64,000 nucleotides of DNA from Saccostrea echinata (Eukaryota), in NCBI RefSeq assembly GCF_033153115.1, contig NW_026889751.1, forward strand, positions 2,666,001 through 2,730,000, written 5' to 3'. Positions 17,971 to 40,230 of this stretch are shown here, in pieces. A program made the translations under genes and the position numbers. Every line of letters begins with the position of its first letter. The stretch's first letter is position 1. The notes under the pieces are model-generated. The model was not told the origin of the DNA. It saw only the letters and a list, made by a program, of their open reading frames with translations, and did not search any database.

Positions 17971-18357
17971 TTTTTATGCCCCCGGATCGAAAGATCCCGG
18001 GGGTATATTGTTTTTGTCCTGTCTGTCTGTTTGTCTGTTTATCTGTTTGTCTGTTTGTCCGTTTGTCTGTTTGTCTGTCTGTCTGTTGTCAACTTTAATC
18101 TTGCCCATAACTTTTGATTGGTTGGAGCTATGACTTTCATATTTCACATGTGTATTCGTTGTGACAAGGCCTTTCTTTGGGTACCATCATATTTGACCTT
18201 TTGACCTTGACCTTGGAGTTTGACCCACTTTTGCAAAATTTTATGAGACTTTAACCTTGGCCATAACTTCTGAACAGTTGGAGCTTGGGGTTTCAAACTT
18301 CACATGTGTATTCCTTGTGACAAGGCCTTTCTTTGGATACCAACAACTTTGACCTTT

Positions 18358-18388
<31 letters not shown>

Positions 18389-19172
18389 GAAAAACTTTAA
18401 CCTTGGCCATAACTTTTGAACAATTGGTGTTTAGGGTTTCAAACCTCACATGTGTATTCCTTGTGACAAGACCTACCTCTGGATATCAACCACTTTGACC
18501 CTTTGACCTTGACCTAGGAGTTTGACCTACTTTTGAAAAACTTTAACCTTGGCCATAAATTTTGAATGGTTGGAGCTAGGGCTTTCATACTTCACATATG
18601 TAATCCTTGCGACAAGACCTTCCTTTTGATACCAACCATCACTTTGACCTTTTGACCTTGACCTAGGAGTTTGACCTACTTTTGAAAAACTTTAACCTTG
18701 GCCATAACTTTTGAATGGTTGATGCTAGGGCTTTCATACTTCACATATGTAATCCTTGCGACAAGACTTTCTTTGGATACCAACCACTTTGACCCTTTGA
18801 CCTTGACCTAGGAGTTTGACCTACTTTTGAAAAACTTTAACCTTGGCCATAACTTTTGAATGGTTGGTGCTAGGGCTTTCATACTTCACATATGTAATCC
18901 TTATGACAAGATCTTCCTTTGGATACCAACCACTTTGACCTTGCCCTTGACGTTTGACTTTTATTTGAAAAACTTTAACCTTTGGCATAACTTTTGAACA
19001 GTTGTATCTAGGTCTTTCAAATTTCACAGGTGTATTCCTCGAGACAAGACCTTTCTTTGGGTATCAACATTTTTTATCTTTTGGTCTGGATTTTGACTTG
19101 CATTTGAAGAAACTTAACCTTAGCCATAAGCTGCCATACGGGGGCATCAGTGTTTCACAAACACATCTTGTT
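17971..19172 (+). mobile_element. non-autonomous Helentron-like (HINE/DINE-type) element with internal ~145-bp tandem repeats
   Basis: 5' hairpin cccggatcgaaagatcccggg, (tctg/tttg) microsatellite, ~7 units ctttaaccttggccataacttttgaa..., 3' end tgtttcacaaacacatcttgtt; short inverted relative at 40231-40542. Confidence 0.75.
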
Positions 19173-22877: not shown

Positions 22878-23941
22878 AACAAGAGGCCCATGGGCAACAA
22901 AGCTCACCTGAGTAACTTTAGCCTTGCTCTTCTTCACCAGATTTTCCCCCTTGAAATACTTATTGTGACCCAAACCTACTCCCGGGGGTCATGATTTGAA
23001 CAATTTAGAATCTACAATAACTTAGGAAGCTTCCACGTAAGTTTCAGCTTTTCTGGTACAGTGGTTCTTGAGAAAAAGATTTTTAAAGAGTTTTCCTATA
23101 TATTTCAATCTGAAACTTTGATTCCCTATTGTAGCCCCACCTTAACCCCCGGGGGCCATGATTTGGACAATTTGGAATCTACACTACTCAAGGATGCTTT
23201 AACATAGATGTCAGCTTTTCTGGTCAGGTGGTTCTTGAGAAGATTTTTAAAGATTTTTCATATATATTTCAATGTAAAACTTTGATTCCCTAATGTGGCC
23301 CCATCCTACCCCCAGGGGTCATGCTTTGAACAATTTAGAATCTACACTACCCAAGGATGCTTTCATATAGGTTTCAGCTTTTCTGATCCAGTGGTTCTTG
23401 AGAAGATTTTTAAAGATTTTTCATATATATATTTCAATGGAAAACTGATTTCCTAATGTGGCCCCCAACCTACCCCTGGAGGTCACGATTTGAACAATTT
23501 AGAATTTACACTAATCAAGGATGCTTACACATAAGTTTCAGCTATTCTGGTACAGTGTTCTTGAGAAGATTTTTAAAGATTTTTCATATATATTTCAATG
23601 TAAAACTTTGATTCCCTAATGTGGCCCCCACCCTACCCCCGGGGGTCATGATTTGAACAATTTAGAATCTATACTACCCAATGATGTTTTCACATAGATT
23701 TCAGCTTTTCTGGCCCAGTGGTTCTTGAGAAGAAGATTTTCTAAAGACCCCACTCTATTTTTGTCTTTTCTTAATTATCTCCCCTTGTAAGGGGACTTGG
23801 CCTTTCATTTTTACAAAAAAAATCTCCACTTCACCCAAGGATGCTTTGTACCAATTTTGGTTAAAATTGGCCCACTGGTTCTTAAGAAGAAGTTGAAAAT
23901 GTGAAAAGTTTACAGATGGACAGATGGATGGTCGACAGACA

Positions 23942-25719: not shown

Positions 25720-27022
25720 TTGGGAACTTATCTAAAAAATTAAAACTAGTCACTCATCCAGAAACTGCAAGTCAAATCCAGCATCTGAAGCAAGTTTGAG
25801 AGTGTTCGTCCCTTGATGCATATTCCATGCAAGTTTGGTTCAGATAGGCCTTATAGTTACTTCGAAATGAGATCTGCTCCAAAAACTTCAACCTGGTCAC
25901 TCATCCGGAAAATGTAGGTCAGATCCAGCATCTGAAGCAAGTCCAGTGGTATGCATCCTTAGATGTATCATCCATGCAAGTTTGGTCAATATAGGGCTTA
26001 TAGTTACTTGGAAATGAGATCTGCTCCAAAAACCTCAACCTGGTCAATCATCTGGAAAATGTAGGTCAGATCCAGCATCTGAAGCAAGTCCAGTGGTGTG
26101 CATCCTTAGATGTATCACCCATGCAAGTTTGGTCAATATAGGGCTTATAGTTACTTGGAAATGAGATCTGCTCCAAAAACTTTAACCTGGTCACTCAACC
26201 AGAAAATGTAGGTCAGATCCAGCATCTGAAGCAAGTCCAGTGGTGTGCATCCTTAGACGTATCATCCATGCAAGTTTGGTCAATATAGGGCTTATAGTTA
26301 CTTGGAAATGAGATCTGCTCCAAAAACTTTAACCTGGTCACTCAACCAGAAAATGTAGGTCAGATCCAGCATCTGAAGCAAGTCCAGTGGTGTGCATCCT
26401 TAGACGTATCATCCATGCAAGTTTGGTCAATATAAGGCTTATAATTACTTAGAAATAAGATCTGCTCCAAAAACTTTAACCTGGTCCCTCATCTGGAAAA
26501 AATATAGGTCATATCCAGCATCTGAAGAAAGTCCAATGGTGTGCATCCTTAGGTGTATCATCCATGCAAGTTTGGTCAATATAGGGCTTTTAGTTACTTG
26601 GAAATGAGATCTGCTCCAGAAACTTTAACCTGGTCACTCATCCGGAAAATATAGGTCAGATCAAGCATCCGAAGCAAGTTCAGTAGTGTGCATCCTTAGA
26701 CATATCATCCATGCAAGTTTGGTCAATATAGGGCCTATAGTTACTTGGAAATGAGACCTGCTCCAAAAACTTTAACCTGCACCAAAAACCTTAACCTGCT
26801 CCAAAAACATTAACCTGGTCATTCTTTAGCTGAAATTGCAGCATCTGAAACCTTGACTGGTACATGTATAATGAAACACACTAGAAGCATCCTCCATGCA
26901 TCTCTGATTGATATAGGGCATAGAAGTACTTGAAAAGAAAACTGCTCCAAAAACTTTAACCTGGGACACCGACGCTCAGAGTATTACATAAGCTCCCCCA
27001 ACTTCGTTGAGGTGAGCTAAAA
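25720..27022 (-). repeat. 147-bp tandem array inside a Helentron-like element
   Basis: gatctgctcc(a) recurs at 25871, 26018, 26165, 26312, 26459, 26608, 26755; terminal hairpin ...gaggtgagctaaaa at ~27020. Confidence 0.85.
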
Positions 27023-28019: not shown

Positions 28020-28246
28020 CTAAAAAAAACCTATAAATTTAATAACACTTCACAAATAACAGGACTTAAATTCCAATTAAATAATTTAGTGATTTTTACA
28101 ACTTGTATATTGTGTGTGGTGTGTGGGTATGAAGGGGGGGGGGGGGGGGGAGGGGGAGACATTAGTTTATCTAACATTTAAAAATGCTCTCTAAAATGAT
28201 GCTTATGATACTTATATGTAGTCATAACCATTAAAAAGCAAGCTAC

Positions 28247-28390
28247 CTCTTTGAATCTCTCAGAGCTTTTAGATCCTTGAGGTCTTTGTCAGTTTTGATG
28301 ACTAGTTCATGAAACATGACCTCCCCCTGACATACACCATCCTCTATCTTCAGCAGCTGTAACGTCATACGGGGACCAATTTCTGTCAAC
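28247..28390 (-). CDS. PPAN: PPAN exon 7 (Brix sigma70-like motif)
   Basis: (R)LTEIGPRMTLQLLKIEDGVCQGEVMFHE carries the diagnostic Brix EIGPR motif. Confidence 0.95.
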
Positions 28391-29046
28391 CTTTCAATAA
28401 ACAAAACAATTTAACTACAAACTTTCACAGAATTATAATGGTACAAGTTGATTATATTTTCTCAACATAAGGCAAAATGTATTCATCTTAAACATGTACA
28501 CAGCACTTTCTGTAAGGAATATTTACTACATGAGACATTACTCTCTAATATGATTTAAATACTAGTACATGTATTTATTGAAGTTGCACTCTAAAAAAAT
28601 AACAGGAAGACTTTGAGCAAATGCTCACTAGTAATACCCCCACTCTGATGTGAATATACACTCTCATGAATCCCACCTAATGGCATGCCTCAACAGTGTG
28701 CTAAAATTTCAAGCATCTGCGATTAGTAGTTGCTGAGAAAACTGCGGCGAAACTTTGTTACGGACAGACACACAGACAGACATATACACACAAGGGTAAA
28801 ACAGTATACCCTCCTCTTCTTCAGTGTGGGGGTATAAAAATTAAGTGGCAATTATTTTTGCAAATTTCTTAAATACAGAATTGAAACTGAACATTAATAT
28901 GCTAAATATAGCTATTTTTCATGTTTTTGAGTACTACTAAACACAAGGGTACAATTTTCTGAAAAATTTTCTGATTGCAAAATTCACATCAACTACTCCT
29001 CAACAGCATTTCCACATTTTTTAACATTTTAAATCCTGCATAAGAA

Positions 29047-29121
29047 AGATCATTCAGAGTGTGTAACATGTCTCTTCATTTATTTCAGAGCCATGGAAGT
29101 AAGGTTTCATCACTATGATCT
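29047..29121 (-). ncRNA. box C/D snoRNA copy A (dual guide, 28S rRNA H43/H44)
   Basis: AGATCAT-A-GTGATGA(C)..ACTTCCATGGCT-CTGA(D')..ATGAAGA(C')..TGTTACACACT-CTGA(D)-ATGATCT; sense within PPAN intron 6. Confidence 0.9.
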
Positions 29122-29597
29122 GGAAAATACTGTATACAGTTTTATTAGTCCCCTACAGGTGAAACCTTTTCTTTCTGTCATTTTGGTTCTTTTTTTCTTC
29201 TATACTCTAGCAGATATTGAGCTGGATTATTGGTATGCGAGTCTACCTTGACAAGTTACAGCTTATGTTTGTATTTCATTCCTCTTTGATGAGATGGATT
29301 TAATGGCTTTTAAGTTTTAAGGGAAACCAGGTTACACTTGCTGGTACTGGTAGGAGAGTAGAATCGCTTATGCAATACTCTCAGAATGCTTTTTTCCATG
29401 AGCAAATTTATATTTTAACTAAAATTATGACATTCAAAACTTAATCAAAAAATCTAAAAAAAAAAAAATTAATGGTGAATAAATAATGAGAAAACTTAAA
29501 AATAATAACAAAACAGATCACAATTCCAAAATTTTCCCTTTGGAAATATATTTGTTTCCATGAATCAATTTTCTATTTCTCTCTGATTATATCAGAA

Positions 29598-29667
29598 GTC
29601 ACTCAGAGTGTGTAACGTGATTCTTCATTTCATCAGAGCCATGGAAGTAAGCTTTCATCACAGTGAC
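29598..29667 (-). ncRNA. box C/D snoRNA copy B
   Basis: GTCACT-GTGATGA..ACTTCCATGGCT-CTGA..ATGAAGA..GTTACACACT-CTGA-GTGAC. Confidence 0.9.
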
Positions 29668-29882
29668 AAGCTATCCTATATAATAAATATTATTTACAGT
29701 GTTTTATGTCTAATTTGTCTTTAAAAAAAAACTTTTTAACATATTTGTCTGAACTTTTTATTTCCCTTTTTCTATTCCCTCTGAACTCTTTCAAACATTA
29801 ATTTCCTTTCTTAAAATGATGTCTGCAATATTACAGTGAACTAGTTCAATAAGTACAAACTTCCATGGACACATACATGCAC

Positions 29883-30315
29883 TAGATAGAACATTCCATT
29901 ATTCAAATGATACTGTCCTATGGACTTGGTTTAATGACAGAATTTGTTCCATATGTTGGCAATGTAGCAAAATAAACAAGAGCAGATAATTCTGAGCTTC
30001 ACAAATACTATGAACAATCCAGAGTTCTGAATGTCATGGTGTATAATTTGAAGCAAGAAAAGACCACTGAGAAAATGTGTTGATTTCTTTCTTTATGTGG
30101 ATTATTTTTTTAGGGTGGAAGACTTGTACAAGCTCAAAAAAATTTTGATTAATTTGATGTTCTTTTGTTTGTTTTTTTTTTTTTCAGTGCAACTTCTTTT
30201 GTATTCCTCAAAATTGTGCCACAGAGGTTTCATTCCAATTTGCTACACTGCAACTATATGGAATGTATTCTAAATGTGGTGAGGGCTTTTCCCGAAACCC
30301 AGCTTATTCTAACTA
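29883..30315. mobile_element. non-autonomous DNA transposon (TAG...CTA ends), same family as 41472-41900
   Basis: Collinear similarity to 41472-41900 over ~430 bp. Confidence 0.7.
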
Positions 30316-30415
30316 GGCACATACTAGAATTTGGTGGTATGATGATTCATTAAATGTTTAAAGACAAAAAGCCAGAACTGATTTCATAAAACAGCAATTA
30401 ATTTCAAATGAAAGA

Positions 30416-30492
30416 CAGATCATTCAGTGTGTGTAACATGGTTCTTCATTTTATTCAGAGCCATGGAAGTATGTTTTCATCACCATGATCTG
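30416..30492 (-). ncRNA. box C/D snoRNA copy C
   Basis: CAGATCAT-G-GTGATGA..ACTTCCATGGCT-CTGA..ATGAAGA..TGTTACACACA-CTGA-ATGATCTG. Confidence 0.9.
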
Positions 30493-30848
30493 GGATATTT
30501 GTCCAACTATACAAGCAAAGGGAAGTAAAAATGTACACTAACACTATTTCATGTTTTTTCACTTATAATACCAGACCGACTACAAAATAAGAACCTCTTA
30601 AAATGTCATTTTGTATTTATACACATTTGATATTGTCCATGAGACTTTGTCTGAAGAGATATGCCCCACTATTGCCATGTATCTGTGTGTACCTGTATGT
30701 CCACAGATATTGCCACTGAATCCTTCTATTTGTGATTAGTTTACAGGCTAAATTTGTGACATGCATAATTTTAAAAAAAAATATGTGTATATTGATAATG
30801 TTTATTTTCTCTTATTATTTGATGGCTTTAAAAGGTACATGTAGTTTA

Positions 30849-30922
30849 GGTCACTCAGTGTGTGTAACAAGGTTCTACATTTTATTTCAGAGCCATGGAA
30901 GTATGTTTTCATCATAGTGACC
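30849..30922 (-). ncRNA. box C/D snoRNA copy D
   Basis: GGTCACT-ATGATGA..ACTTCCATGGCT-CTGA..ATGTAGA..TTGTTACACACA-CTGA-GTGACC. Confidence 0.88.
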
Positions 30923-31035
30923 AAAGTCATGTATTAGTTCTTTTTCAATCAGCTCTGCTGTAAATATTTACATGTACTAGTATCAGTGATACTAATTATT
31001 ATTAGTAATTATTAGTCAGTGAGAAATACTCAAGA

Positions 31036-31108
<73 letters not shown>

Positions 31109-31109
<1 letters not shown>

Positions 31110-32100
31110 CTGTGACAAAGCTCATTCAGAGTGTGTAACAAGTTTCTTAACATGTAAATATATTTATTTTGCTGTGACAAAGCTCATTCAGAGTGTGTAA
31201 CAAGTTTCTTCACATGTAAATATATTTATTTTGCTGTGACAAAGCTCATTCAGAGTGTGTAACAAGTTTCTTCACATGTAAATATATTTATTTTGCTGTG
31301 ACAAAGCTCATTCAGAGTGTGTAACAAGTTTCTTCACATGTAAATATATTTATTTTGCTGTGACAAAGCTCATTCAGAGTGTGTAACAAGTTTCTTCACA
31401 TGTAAATATATTTATTTTGCTGTGACAAAGCTCATTCAGAGTGTGTAACAAGTTTCTTAACATGTAAATATATTTATTTTGCTGTGACAAAGCTCATTCA
31501 GAGTGTGTAACAAGTTTCTTCACATGTAAATATATTTATTTTGCTGTGACAAAGCTCATTCAGAGTGTGTAACAAGTTTCTTCACATGTAAATATATTTA
31601 TTTTGCTGTGACAAAGCTCATTCAGAGTGTGTAACAAGTTTCTTAACATGTAAATATATTTATTTTGCTGTGACAAAGCTCATTCAGAGTGTGTAACAAG
31701 TTTCTTCACATGTAAATATATTTATTTTGCTGTGACAAAGCTCATTCAGAGTGTGTAACAAGTTTCTTCACATGTAAATATATTTATTTTGCTGTGACAA
31801 AGCTCATTCAGAGTGTGTAACAAGTTTCTTAACATGTAAATATCTTTATTTTGCTGTGACAAAGCTCATTCAGAGTGTGTAACAAGTTTCTTCACATGTA
31901 AATATATTTATTTTGCTGTGACAAAGCTCATTCAGAGTGTGTAACAAGTTTCTTCACATGTAAATATCTTTATTTTGCTGTGACAAAGCTCATTCAGAGT
32001 GTGTAACAAGTTTCTTCACATGTAAATATATTTATTTTGCTGTGACAAAGCTCATTCAGAGTGTGTAACAAGTTTCTTCACATGTAAATATCTTTATTTT
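31109..32100 (-). repeat. 16 x 62-bp minisatellite made of the 3' half of the snoRNA
   Basis: Unit gctgtgacaaagctcattcagagtgtgtaacaagtttcttcacatgtaaatatatttatttt; 992/62 = 16; runs directly into snoRNA copy E. Confidence 0.95.
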
Positions 32101-32104
32101 GCTG

Positions 32105-32191
32105 TGACAAAGCTCATTCAGAGTGTGTAACAAGTTTTCTTCACAAGTCTCAGAGCCATGGAAGTAAGCTTTCATCATAATGACTCTGTCA
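32105..32191 (-). ncRNA. box C/D snoRNA copy E
   Basis: TGACAGAGTCATT-ATGATGA..ACTTCCATGGCT-CTGA..GTGAAGA..TTGTTACACACT-CTGA-ATGAGCTTTGTCA. Confidence 0.88.
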
Positions 32192-32268
32192 CTGATATCA
32201 TTTTCATCATAATGACTCTGTCACTGATATCATTTTCATCATAATGACTCTGTCACTGATATCATTTT
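32171..32268 (-). repeat. 3 x 32-bp repeat of the snoRNA 5' end (stem + C box)
   Basis: ttcatcataatgactctgtcactgatatcatt at 32171, 32203 and 32235. Confidence 0.9.
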
Positions 32269-32297
32269 CCTTGAGGAACTTCTCAGTTCTACTTTAC

Positions 32298-32920
32298 CAG
32301 GGATTTTTTTAGGGTCTCTCTGGGGCCGAAATTCGGCCCCATTCCCAATGCTGAAAAGTGCATGTTTTTCCCAAAATTAGACCTAAAAATTCCCAATATA
32401 AAAAAAGTATTTAAAAGTTGTAAATTATTAAAATAAAATAAGACAAAAAAGGTGTTTATGTTATGTTCTCTATGTGCGATGTACGAGCCATCCGAGGAGT
32501 TTCAAGAAGTTATTCGAAATACTACAGATGTTTGCATGCATACTTTTTAAAGCGGGATCGATGTTTAAATATTAAAGTCGGGATCGTTATTTAATAAATA
32601 AACGTGCATCATGTCAGTCTCTCCAGTTTGACGGTAATTTTCAGGCTGGGTTGAATCACTTTTATTCTTATAAATTGGTCAAACAATACCGATTAACCAC
32701 TCATCTGGAACAAACAGCTGCTATTATTTCATATCACTAAAGCTTGTTTAAGCCAGCTTCATACTAAAAAAAAATAAGAAAAATGATTAAATATTTGACT
32801 TTTGCCTGTTTCTTCCTATTTATTTCTATGAAGATATTTTTCCTAATTTCAACCAAATATCACTATTTTTCCCAATCTTGACTGTCCCGGCCCCTGGAAT
32901 CAAAGGGTAAAAAATCCTTG
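32298..32920. mobile_element. MITE (CAGGG...CCTTG ends)
   Basis: cagggattttt / aaaaatccttg ends; ttcccaa subterminal motifs. Confidence 0.45.
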
Positions 32921-33780
32921 TTTACTGCATTCACATTGGTAAATGTACCCTGACACACCTAAGAAAACTTGCATCATTGATGTTTATCTATGAAACTCTA
33001 AACAGCCTTGATGTTGACCCTTTTCAAGACTTCAAGTATGGTCCTCTCTATGTATTCTAGATGCTGCCCACACTGGGGTTGTATCACTAGATATTTTACC
33101 TGATGGCACTTTAAGCAGCCTTGATGTTGCCTCTACTTCAGACCTTTATCGTTTATCACTAGTTATTAAATGATCAGAAACACTGATGTTCTCTGATTGG
33201 TCTAGACTGTCTTTCCTGAGGTGTACCTCAGAAAGAGTTCACCTCAAAATGAAGTTCCGAGACATTTATTCCAGTTTTCTCTCTTCACCAACCATAGATT
33301 TTTTATCGAACAATCAAATTGCATGTTTTAGAGCATGTGTTGTTGTGAATGGTAGTATTGAAGAGACTAAAATCTTTATTGTTTTATAATTTTGTTCCTT
33401 TTTTTAAACAGTTCTTAAACTATGTTGAAATATAATTATGATATGTTGTTACACATTATATTTTGAGTGTTAACATATTTTAGAGACAATCAATGTTGCA
33501 AAATCCCTTAGTATTTGATAAAAGGATTATTAACTTTAGATTTCAGTCTTCTCAAGACCATACGGTCATGGTCAGGTTTGTATAGTCACAAAAAGACCTC
33601 ATCAATAGTCAATAACTGTATAAAGTTATATCAGATGGCACGACACTCTTTGAATCACTGATGTCACCCCTACCTCAGGATTGTGTCACTAGATGTTGAT
33701 GTTGTCCCTACCTCACTAGATGTTAACCTTATGGCACTTTTAGCAGCTTTGACGTTGCCCCTACCTCACTAGATATTTAC

Positions 33781-33894
33781 CTGATGGCACTTTTAGCAGC
33801 TTTGATGTTGCCCCTACTTCTGATGTCTTGGGGTAAGACCACTTCATTATGCTCTCCATCCAGTTCTGCTTCACTCTCTGAGAGGTTACCTCCC
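33781..33894 (-). CDS. PPAN: PPAN exon 6
   Basis: GGNLSESEAELDGEHNEVVLPQDIRSRGNIKAAKSAIR contains the conserved SESE and LPQ..RGN..SAIRL motifs. Confidence 0.93.
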
Positions 33895-34392: not shown

Positions 34393-34451
34393 GAATGTAT
34401 AGATCACGTAAAAATATATATAAGTACTCTTTCTACTTACTACTTACTTAC

Positions 34452-35304: not shown

Positions 35305-35593
35305 CTCATCACAGGATACTCCTACATTGTAAATGATTATTTCATCATAAGATATTCCTATATTGCTAATGTTTATTTCATCATAAGATACTCCTACCTT
35401 GTTAATGTTTATTTCATCACAAGATATTCCTATATTGCTAATGTTTATTTCATCATAAGATACTCCTACCTTGTTAATGTTTATTTAATCACAAGATATT
35501 CCTATATTGCTAATGTTTATTTCATCATAAGATACTCCTACCTTGTTAATGATTATTTCATCATAAGATACTCCTACCTTGTTAATGTTTATT
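35305..35593 (-). repeat. ~8 x 36-bp tandem repeat spanning the PPAN exon 3 donor
   Basis: Unit AACATTAACAAG|GTAGGAGTATCTTATGATGAAATA with two alternating variants. Confidence 0.85.
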
Positions 35594-37857: not shown

Positions 37858-40230
37858 AACAAGAGGCCCATGGGCCTTGAATCGCTCTTCTGATAAACTG
37901 TATAACCTATCACTTCTATTTGAAGCCTCAAAGTATCCTGTATATTTACATAAACCCTTGAAATTCCAATTCATACTCTGAGAACCCAAGATGATTCTAA
38001 GCCAATTAGTACCTGAGAGTTGGTCATGGTGACCTACTTATCACTTGTCATTCTCTGAGGACCCATCAACTAAGTTTGATGATTCTAAGCCAATTAATAC
38101 CTAAAATATTTTTTAAAATTATAATCATAAAATTTTATAAGTAGGTCAAAGTGACCTACTTTTCAATTGTTTTACTCCAAGGACCCAAGATGCATCAACT
38201 GACAAAGTTTGATGATTCTAAGCCAATTAGTACCTGTAATATTTAAATAAAGCCATAAATTTTCAAAAGTAGGTCACTGTGACCTACTTTTCAGTTGCTG
38301 TACTCCGAGGACCAAAGATACATCGCCTGACAAAGTTTGATGATTCTAGCCAATAAGTACCCAAAATATTTAATTACAGCCATAAATTTTCAAAAGTAGG
38401 TCACAGTGACCTACTTTTCAGTCAACCTACTCCGAGGACCAAAGTTGCATCAACTGACAAATTTTGACGATTCTAAGCCAAATAATTCCTGAAAATATTA
38501 AATACAGCCATAAAATTTCAAAAGTAGGTCACCGTGACCTACTTTTCAGCTGTTGTACTCCGAGGACCCAAGACGCATCAATTGACAAAGTTTAATGATT
38601 CTAAGCCAATTAGTACTCGAAATATTTGATTAAAGCCATAAATTTTCAAAAGTAGGTCACCGTGACCTACTTTTCAGTTGTTGTACTCAGAGGACCCATG
38701 ACGCCTAAACTGACAAAGTTTTATGATTCTAAGCCAATTAGTACCCAAAATATTTTATTAAAGCCATAAATTTTCTGAAAGTAGGTCACGGTGACCTACT
38801 TTTTAGTCGACCTACTCCGAAGACCCATGATGCATCAACTGACAAAGTTTGATGATTCTAAGCCAATTAGTACCCGAAATATTTAATTAAAGCCATAAAT
38901 TTTCAAAAGTAGGTCACGGTGACCTACTTTTTAGTCGATCTACTCTGAAGACCCAAGATGCATCAACTGACAAAGTTTGATGATTCTAAGCCAATTAGTA
39001 CCCGAAATATTTAATTATCGCCATAAATTTTCAAAAGTAGGTCACTGTGACCTACTTTTTAGTCGACCTACTCCGAAGACCCAAGATGCATCAACTGACA
39101 AAGTTTGATGATTCTAAGTCAATTAGTACCCGAAATATTTAATTAACGCCATAAATTTTCAAAAGTAGGTCACTGTGACCTACTTTTTAGTTGACCTACT
39201 CCGAAAACCCAAGATGCATCAACTGACAAAGTTTTATGATTCTAAGCCAATTAGTACCTGAAATATTTAATTATAGTCATATAAATTGAAAAGTAGGTCA
39301 CGGTGACCTACTTTTCAGTTGACCTTTTTTGAGGACCCAAGATGCATCAACTTACAAAGTTTTATGATCATAGGACTTAAAATGTCCAAATTATGCCTCT
39401 CAAACGCTTTGAAATCGAATGCCTGCAAAGTTCAAAAAGTAGGTCACTGTGACCTACTTTTTAATAAATATGTTTTATGGCCCCAAGATGCATCATCTTA
39501 CAAGATTTAATGATTCTAAGCCTCCCGGTATTCGAATTAATGACCTTAATTGTTTTAAAAAAGATTAGCCATAAAATTCAAAAAGTAGGTCAAGGTGACC
39601 TACTTTTTAGTTGACGTACTTTGAGGACCCAAGATGCATCAACTGACAAAGTTTGATGATCATAGGCCTTAAATTGTTCAAAATATGCCTCTAAATCATT
39701 TTGAAAAAGAATGGCCGCAAAATTTAAAAAGTAGGTCACCGTGACCTACTTTTGAGTCAACATGATATGAGGTCCTTAGATGCACCAACTGACAAGATTT
39801 GATGATCCTAGTCCTTATAGTAAGCAAAATATCAACATTTTAATAAAATGTAATTTTTGGTCAACTTTGAAGTGACCTTGAGACCACGCCCTTTGCCCCA
39901 GGGTAAATCCCCGTGCAAATTTTAATCTACAACATATCCTCATCCTTTTGTGTAAGTTTGGTGATAATCTGCCCAGTGGTTCTTGAGAAGAAGATTTTTT
40001 AGCAACCAGTACTTTTTTTTCTATTTTCCTAATTATCTCCCCTTGTTAAAGGGTCACAACCCCAGTTTTAGTATAAAAGGGAGCCCTTGGGCCAAGGATA
40101 CCCTGTGACAAATTTGACAATAATTGGCCAAGGGGTTCTTGAGTTATGGCCCATATTCTAAAAAGTTTACGCACACCGCACAAATGGCCATAGCATTAGC
40201 TCTTTGAGCCTTTGGCTCAGAAGAGCTAAA
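37858..40230 (-). mobile_element. Helentron-like element with a 128-bp (then 146-bp) palindrome-containing tandem array
   Basis: gtagg recurs every 128 bp from ~38141 to 39293, then every 146 bp to 39731; terminal hairpin gctctttgagcctttggctcagaagagctaaaa. Confidence 0.85.

Follow-up and report, generated by a model that had tools for sequence, protein, structure and literature searches.

The closest described relatives of the locus reported here are intronic minisatellites (VNTRs), tandemly amplified box C/D snoRNA loci, and snoRNA-bounded intron RNAs. Local tandem amplification of snoRNA genes is seen both in SNORD115/116-type arrays and in the polycistronic clusters of plants and some invertebrates; in both, the repeated unit is a whole snoRNA gene, often together with a host exon. 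The sno-lncRNAs of the PWS region and RPL13A, for which two snoRNAs in one intron are the prerequisite (PMC4234469), carry protein-binding motifs such as Fox sites in their interior.

Here we describe a locus, in a 64-kb window (the whole stretch of DNA that was analyzed), in which halves of one box C/D snoRNA gene are tandemly repeated at both edges of that gene, within an intron of PPAN. The locus is an unusual form of two features that are each known, the minisatellite and the tandemly amplified snoRNA locus. Like intronic VNTRs, it is built of near-identical units, 32 or 62 bp long, that follow one another head to tail and are grouped into higher-order blocks of two or three; it likewise has microhomology at a junction, an adjacent microsatellite, and array-rich surroundings. 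What sets it apart from VNTRs is that its units are not anonymous: they correspond precisely to the two functional halves, 5′ and 3′, of one conserved gene for a guide RNA, which is affected at both edges. The five complete snoRNA copies at the locus (A to E) form a cluster of the SNORD115/116 or polycistronic kind. However, the youngest repeats are partial genes, which, unlike whole-gene units, cannot each form a C/D kink-turn. In the literature on partial-snoRNA amplification, we found no precedent. With sno-lncRNAs, the locus shares the presence of several complete C/D snoRNAs in one intron, as well as RNA contigs that bridge adjacent snoRNAs and end near snoRNA termini, a likeness that is post hoc and comes from low-depth contigs. 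It differs from them in that the interior is an array of snoRNA halves, in that the host is an invertebrate protein-coding gene for ribosome biogenesis, and in being known from contigs rather than as a stable non-polyadenylated species.

Five complete snoRNA copies lie in one PPAN intron

Copy E, the gene beside which the arrays lie, has the architecture of a box C/D snoRNA. The C box (ATGATGA) near its 5′ end is followed by a D′ guide, ACTTCCATGGC, with CTGA directly after it, then by a C′-like box (GTGAAGA), and finally by the D guide, TTGTTACACACT, with a second CTGA near the 3′ end. The ends are joined by a 14-bp bulged external (terminal) stem, present in both the minimum free energy and the centroid structure. 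Five occurrences of the D′ guide word were counted in the window (0.08 expected). In an alignment of the five loci, both guides and the C, D′, and D boxes do not vary. Since these boxes and guides are invariant though overall column identity is only 75% (flanks included), copy E was under constraint until recently. Searching the 923-Mb genome with BLAST and with a two-guide pattern returned exactly five full copies, all in one PPAN intron (Table 1). The initial annotation had overlooked that all five share this intron.

At gathering thresholds, Rfam gave no match anywhere in the window. At E ≤ 10, the 24–40 kb region gave weak matches to SNORD79, SNORD100, and SNORD102 (20.7–25.5 bits, E-values 0.7–9), far below the gathering scores of the matched C/D families (47–58 bits). 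The PPAN-intron snoRNAs have generic C/D box architecture in common with these families, but their guides differ. Judged by these scores, the matches reflect that generic architecture only, and the snoRNA belongs to no curated family. Metagenome contigs scanned with the two-guide pattern gave no match.

As RNA data, we used Logan contigs (k = 31) of four runs (X1, X3, X5, and X6), which come from three studies under two organism labels and include cDNA. PPAN had already been named as the host, and both the Brix-domain exons on the minus strand and spliced cDNA contigs bear this out: spliced PPAN contigs are present in all four runs, with position 34451 joined to 33893 across a GT..AG intron. 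After the exon ending at 33781, the loose end of a cDNA contig reads LTEIGPRMT and maps to 28359–28388. As cDNA contigs join the flanking exons and the splice sites are present in the sequence, all five snoRNA copies lie in a single GT..AG intron that runs from 33780 down to 28391.

In animals, the usual rule is one snoRNA per intron. Five C/D paralogues in one 5.39-kb intron of a protein-coding host depart from this rule. With five snoRNAs in one intron, processing must therefore involve endonucleolytic cuts, or snoRNA-bounded RNAs result.

Dispersed repeats also occur in the intron. One copy of a high-copy repeat lies ~30 nt upstream, in transcript sense, of the 32-bp units described below; the full element is ~740 bp, and ~125 bp of its interior are missing here. 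The repeat has at least 692 candidate copies on many contigs, 91–93% identical, and the copy in the intron accounts for the divergent RNA contigs found at 32300–32915. A transcribed dispersed element at 28700–28850 has very high depth in all RNA runs (mean word depth 319–2975).

The PPAN exons themselves show further tandem duplication. The last ~35 nt of a PPAN exon and its GT donor are duplicated in the intron as a 53-bp × 2.3 repeat (33696–33817, minus strand), and a further copy of the exon end lies ~650 nt downstream, at ~33090–33140 on the minus strand, with an intact-looking donor, CATCAG|GTAAAA. These duplicated exon ends may be possible decoy or alternative 5′ splice sites. At 35306–35593 (minus strand), a 36/72-bp tandem repeat (eight or four copies) overlaps the 3′ end of a Brix-domain exon, and the open frame runs on through repeated NKVGVSYDEI-type peptides past the likely donor site. 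There is also a synonymous polymorphism at 28363 in a PPAN exon, with ACG (Thr) in the genome and X5 and ACA in X1, X3, and X6.

Table 1. Coordinates in the window of the PPAN exons, host intron, snoRNA copies, and repeats
Feature	Position	Strand	Basis
PPAN exon upstream of the host intron, ends ...KSAI R	33781..33893	-	cDNA contigs, sequence
PPAN intron, GT..AG, 5,390 nt, with five snoRNA copies, both arrays, and a dispersed repeat	28391..33780	-	spliced contigs, splice sites
High-copy dispersed repeat, one copy	32300..32915	.	contigs, genome search
Three 32-bp units, 5′ external-stem arm and C box	32170..32269	-	repeat finder, register script
Box C/D snoRNA copy E with 14-bp bulged external stem	32104..32192 (core ~32111-32185)	-	alignment, fold
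16 extra 62-bp units	31109..32084	-	repeat finder, register script; head-to-tail junction in cDNA contigs
(AT)35 microsatellite	31038..31107	.	repeat finder, sequence reading
snoRNA paralogue D	30848..30923	-	alignment, genome search
snoRNA paralogue C	30417..30491	-	alignment, genome search
snoRNA paralogue B	~29598..29667 (ends estimated from the alignment)	-	alignment, genome search
snoRNA paralogue A	29047..29121	-	alignment, genome search
PPAN exon downstream of the host intron, LTEIGPRMTLQLL...	28243..28390	-	cDNA contigs, loose-end mapping, splice sites

Both guides are complementary to LSU rDNA

The two guides are exactly complementary to the LSU rDNA of the same genome, over 11 and 12–13 nt. 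The combined two-guide pattern gave 56 rDNA matches, spaced like rDNA units, while the reversed control gave none, in agreement with the anti-28S guide proposed at the outset. The target locus was identified as LSU_rRNA_eukarya (2162 bits). Copy E thus carries, directly upstream of D or D′, the stretch of at least 10 nt complementary to rRNA that marks a guide. The target nucleotide is set by the fifth-nucleotide rule, which points to two predicted target sites, A in GCC[A]UGGAAGU and U in GAGUG[U]GUAACAA. Alignment to a fragment of E. coli rRNA (1051–1108) would place these sites in H42–H44, in the GTPase-associated region. The literature on snoRNAs that target the GTPase-associated center yielded nothing on sites in H42–H44.

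Halves of copy E are repeated at both of its edges

Tandem Repeats Finder reported a 62-bp period repeated 16.9 times at 31096–32145 (98% matches, no indels, score 2028), a 32-bp period repeated 3.1 times (100% matches), and the AT microsatellite. Both arrays are minisatellites in the sense of head-to-tail units of ~10–100 bp with high identity. When both strands were read, the snoRNAs and the arrays proved to be on the same transcript strand, the minus strand. With the units placed in register on this strand by script, the motif formed by the guide and D box occurs 17 times at a spacing of exactly 62 bp; the guide word as such occurs 18 times in the window (0.09 expected). Unit 0 is the 3′ half of copy E, and units 1–16 are extra, so the 16 additional D-box/guide halves that had been described 3′ of copy E are all present.

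All 62-bp units have the same layout. A C′-like box, mostly GTGAAGA and GTTAAGA in extra units 5, 8, 11, and 16 (a variant already noticed in some units), is followed by the 12-nt anti-LSU guide, box D (CTGA), the 3′ arm of the stem (ATGAGCTTTGTCAC), and an AT-rich spacer. The last unit is truncated by the microsatellite, which directly adjoins it. On the other side of copy E, three perfect 32-bp units start at 32265, 32233, and 32201, and all of them carry a C box (ATGATGA) together with the 5′ arm (GTGACAGAGTCAT). Of the three, the last is copy E's own 5′ end, which leaves the two extra 32-bp units that had been annotated. These units are bounded on both sides by GAAA, a microhomology of the slippage type. 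The stem arms are identical in all units, 5′ (3/3) and 3′ (17/17), and the units are halves of a C/D snoRNA that looks bona fide.

With BLAST, neither the 62-bp unit nor the array had a second site in the 923-Mb genome. The description of the array as a minisatellite seeded by a functional non-coding RNA gene holds. Because the 62-bp unit is restricted to this locus genome-wide, we rejected a dispersed satellite or a transposon as its source.

RNA contigs recover the junction between units

Each of the four runs contains a 92-nt contig that matches the 62-bp array with 0–1 differences. This is the length expected when a k = 31 assembler meets a closed 62-bp cycle (92 = 62 + 30), and the contigs contain the head-to-tail junction between units. 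Because four runs, drawn from three studies, all have this junction, the tandem arrangement cannot be put down to an assembly artefact. Moreover, as cDNA is among the runs, the array is transcribed, at a minimum in the form of pre-mRNA or intron RNA. Thus, the earlier claim that the array is real stands for the tandem arrangement, while copy number is outside what the contigs show: with k = 31 the array is collapsed, and presence in four runs gives no count of units among individuals.

The array contigs have depths of 13.5, 13.6, 4.7, and 2.4 in X1, X3, X5, and X6, respectively. In X1 and X3, neighboring single-copy intron contigs have depths of 3.4–5.4, making the array 2.5–4-fold higher; PPAN exon depths are 15–243. 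These values fit a multi-copy sequence at intron-level abundance, and no copy number follows from them, as contig depth is one mean per contig, is distorted by bubbles at the two variant sites, and is available only for the single-copy stretches covered well enough to assemble. In X5 and X6, the array contig is the only near-perfect match to the window in the intron between 29.5 and 32.3 kb. The 28.9–31.9 kb snoRNA stretch gave no contigs in these two runs besides a high-depth repeat near 29.3–29.5 kb and small traces in X6.

Variation among units and the origin of the arrays

Across the 17 units there are just two variable sites. At one, AAAGATATT stands in place of AAATATATT in units 0, 2, and 4; the other is the replacement of GTGAAGA by GTTAAGA. 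In addition, the run that follows the C′-like box differs by a single A between copy E and every extra unit. Because the variants alternate (0, 2, 4) or recur with a period of three (5, 8, 11), we infer a very recent origin with growth by blocks of two and three units. The recent expansion proposed from unit identity is thus supported by higher-order structure as well.

The surroundings are rich in similar events. Approximately 16 minisatellite arrays cover ~11% of the 64-kb window, and five local tandem duplications lie within ~4.5 kb of PPAN, some of them overlapping exon ends. Most of the tandem-repeat content comes from large arrays with periods of 128–163 bp, at 18091–19083, 22964–23733, 25734–26817, and 38072–39832, which are apparently satellites internal to transposons.

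On balance, we favor the reading that the feature is a young minisatellite, probably neutral or mildly deleterious, in which the proximal C/D pair of copy E is still used and the surplus halves are discarded. No constraint is seen on the extra units. A kink-turn needs the G of its box for the sheared G·A pairs, and this G is lost in the 4 of 16 extra units with GTTAAGA, so one of the only two mutations destroys it. The region is prone to tandem duplication, and the five full copies with invariant boxes and guides amount to redundancy.

Under the minisatellite reading, replication slippage or unequal exchange would have produced a pair of local minisatellites, one at each edge of copy E, itself a member of a redundant set of five snoRNA genes. 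The first step may have been the duplication of a 62-bp segment that begins at the C′ box of copy E, takes in the guide, D box, and 3′ arm, and extends into the AT-rich flank; this segment may then have grown by blocks of one, two, and three units to 17 D boxes. Separately, the GAAA-bounded 32-bp segment with the 5′ stem arm and C box would have been triplicated. The whole array would be transcribed within the 5.4-kb PPAN intron, where the proximal C and D boxes of copy E most likely still form a normal snoRNP of ~75 nt. The surplus D-box halves would fold as local hairpins without a C-box partner (at most three exist) and would be removed with the intron or the spacer between snoRNAs. Any loss in the yield of copy E would be buffered by paralogues A–D, which carry the same two guides.

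Some observations sit less easily with accident. Under a naive uniform model, a hand calculation from array density gives a chance of ~1% that two arrays abut the same 75-nt gene, so that a common cause or selection may lie behind the two arrays. The amplified segments are exactly the two arms of copy E's unusually long 14-bp stem, which would favor long-range pairing if free arms meet. The excess depth of the array is explained by copy collapse, but some stabilization would explain it too.

Other readings of the array RNA

Of the alternatives to a minisatellite whose surplus halves are discarded, the one that survives best is that array RNA persists in a snoRNA-bounded intron product, either a sno-lncRNA or a polycistronic precursor, a reading that we treat as tentative and consider doubtful. 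Five snoRNPs would form on one intron, and exonuclease trimming would halt at copy E on the 5′ side and at copy D or A on the 3′ side. The products, E...D of ~1.3 kb or E...A of ~3.1 kb, would include the E–D spacer, which is almost entirely made up of the 16 guide/D-box units, and these units could bind core proteins or pre-rRNA as a decoy. The 5,390-nt spliced intron holds five snoRNAs where at least two are needed for a sno-lncRNA (PMC4234469). In X1, contigs of unique sequence cover 8 of 10 200-bp bins from copy A to the array, compared with none of the 4–5 unique bins in the rest of the intron (p ~0.01, calculated by hand and post hoc). One X1 contig (29051–29437), which reaches 316 nt upstream of copy A, has its end at 29051, 3 nt beyond the D box of A; an X3 contig (30437–30916) stops just short of the outer end of copy C on one side and of copy D on the other, and another X1 contig (30291–30988) bridges these two copies. 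This pattern suggests snoRNA-bounded precursors or stable products.

However, these contigs are of low depth (3–5×), come from runs whose library type is not given, and have ends set by drop-outs in coverage. Given ten snoRNA ends near which a contig could stop, a single such agreement carries no significance. Flanking sequence is absent from the array contig, which thus shows no join to copy E or D in RNA, and the long species may be short-lived intermediates of processing. A role as a decoy is wholly unsupported. It strikes us as very improbable that the array is kept in a stable intron RNA capped by E at the 5′ end and by D or A at the 3′ end, and that its 16 guide/D-box modules, which alternate with C′-like boxes in a D′-loop-C′-like order, attract core proteins of the snoRNP or base-pair with pre-LSU rRNA at its H44 strand.

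The initial annotation had instead proposed that any of the three C boxes could pair with any of the 17 D boxes, giving a ladder of extended snoRNAs in steps of +62 nt with many anti-28S guides. Taken with the 32-bp units, such a ladder of snoRNPs would have steps of +32 and +62 nt and several anti-LSU guides, and it might serve as a source of multi-guide snoRNAs, as a snoRNP sponge, or as an allele of variable dosage. We consider this unlikely. On paper, the pairings are of equal energy, since the arms are identical; the stem of copy E is long and stable (14 bp with a bulge, −15.6 kcal/mol for the centroid of the stem alone), and a nested arrangement of C3:D1, C2:D2, and C1:D3 is topologically possible. 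In a construct of three C and four D units, the ensemble was degenerate, with no defined centroid, and no more stable than shuffled sequences (z = −0.98). Free choice among all 17 D boxes does not follow, as a transcript with three C arms and 17 D arms can form at most three C/D kink-turns. Furthermore, each 62-bp unit folds as a local hairpin (−11.4 kcal/mol) in which its guide, D box, and 3′ arm are buried, and folding during transcription favors the proximal pair and these unit-internal hairpins. The extra units are not C/D snoRNAs, having a C′-like box and no C box of their own, and they are incomplete as guide modules, since the D′ guide is absent too; four of them have also lost the kink-turn G. 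The same guides are supplied by paralogues A–D. The ladder and sponge ideas are thus somewhat disfavored, and a snoRNA-bounded precursor or sno-lncRNA is the better-grounded route to lasting array RNA.

It is hardly credible that the array, or even just the length it has, was created by the assembly, for although the k = 31 contigs collapse the array, the junction between units recurs in independent runs, the variants are in an ordered pattern rather than noise, the ~1.05-kb array is well inside long-read length, and the contigs behave as for multi-copy sequence, both in their excess depth over single-copy intron in X1 and X3 and in being the sole near-perfect match at 29.5–32.3 kb in X5 and X6.

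Discussion

The array beside copy E is a clean case, found in nature, of a minisatellite seeded by a functional non-coding RNA gene, and the locus illustrates that redundancy among paralogues can let one gene copy tolerate gross rearrangement. Five snoRNAs in one intron of a protein-coding host are, in themselves, a useful point for annotation. If the array RNAs are stable, the locus would be a natural experiment on how C/D snoRNPs choose among competing C and D boxes, and it would bear on snoRNA-capped intron RNAs outside mammals and on differences between individuals in guide dosage at a functional center of the ribosome. Were the array indeed retained in a stable snoRNA-capped RNA, with modules that recruit core proteins or pair with pre-rRNA, it would be a naturally evolved, copy-number-variable, multivalent decoy or chaperone for the GTPase-associated region, encoded in a ribosome-assembly gene.
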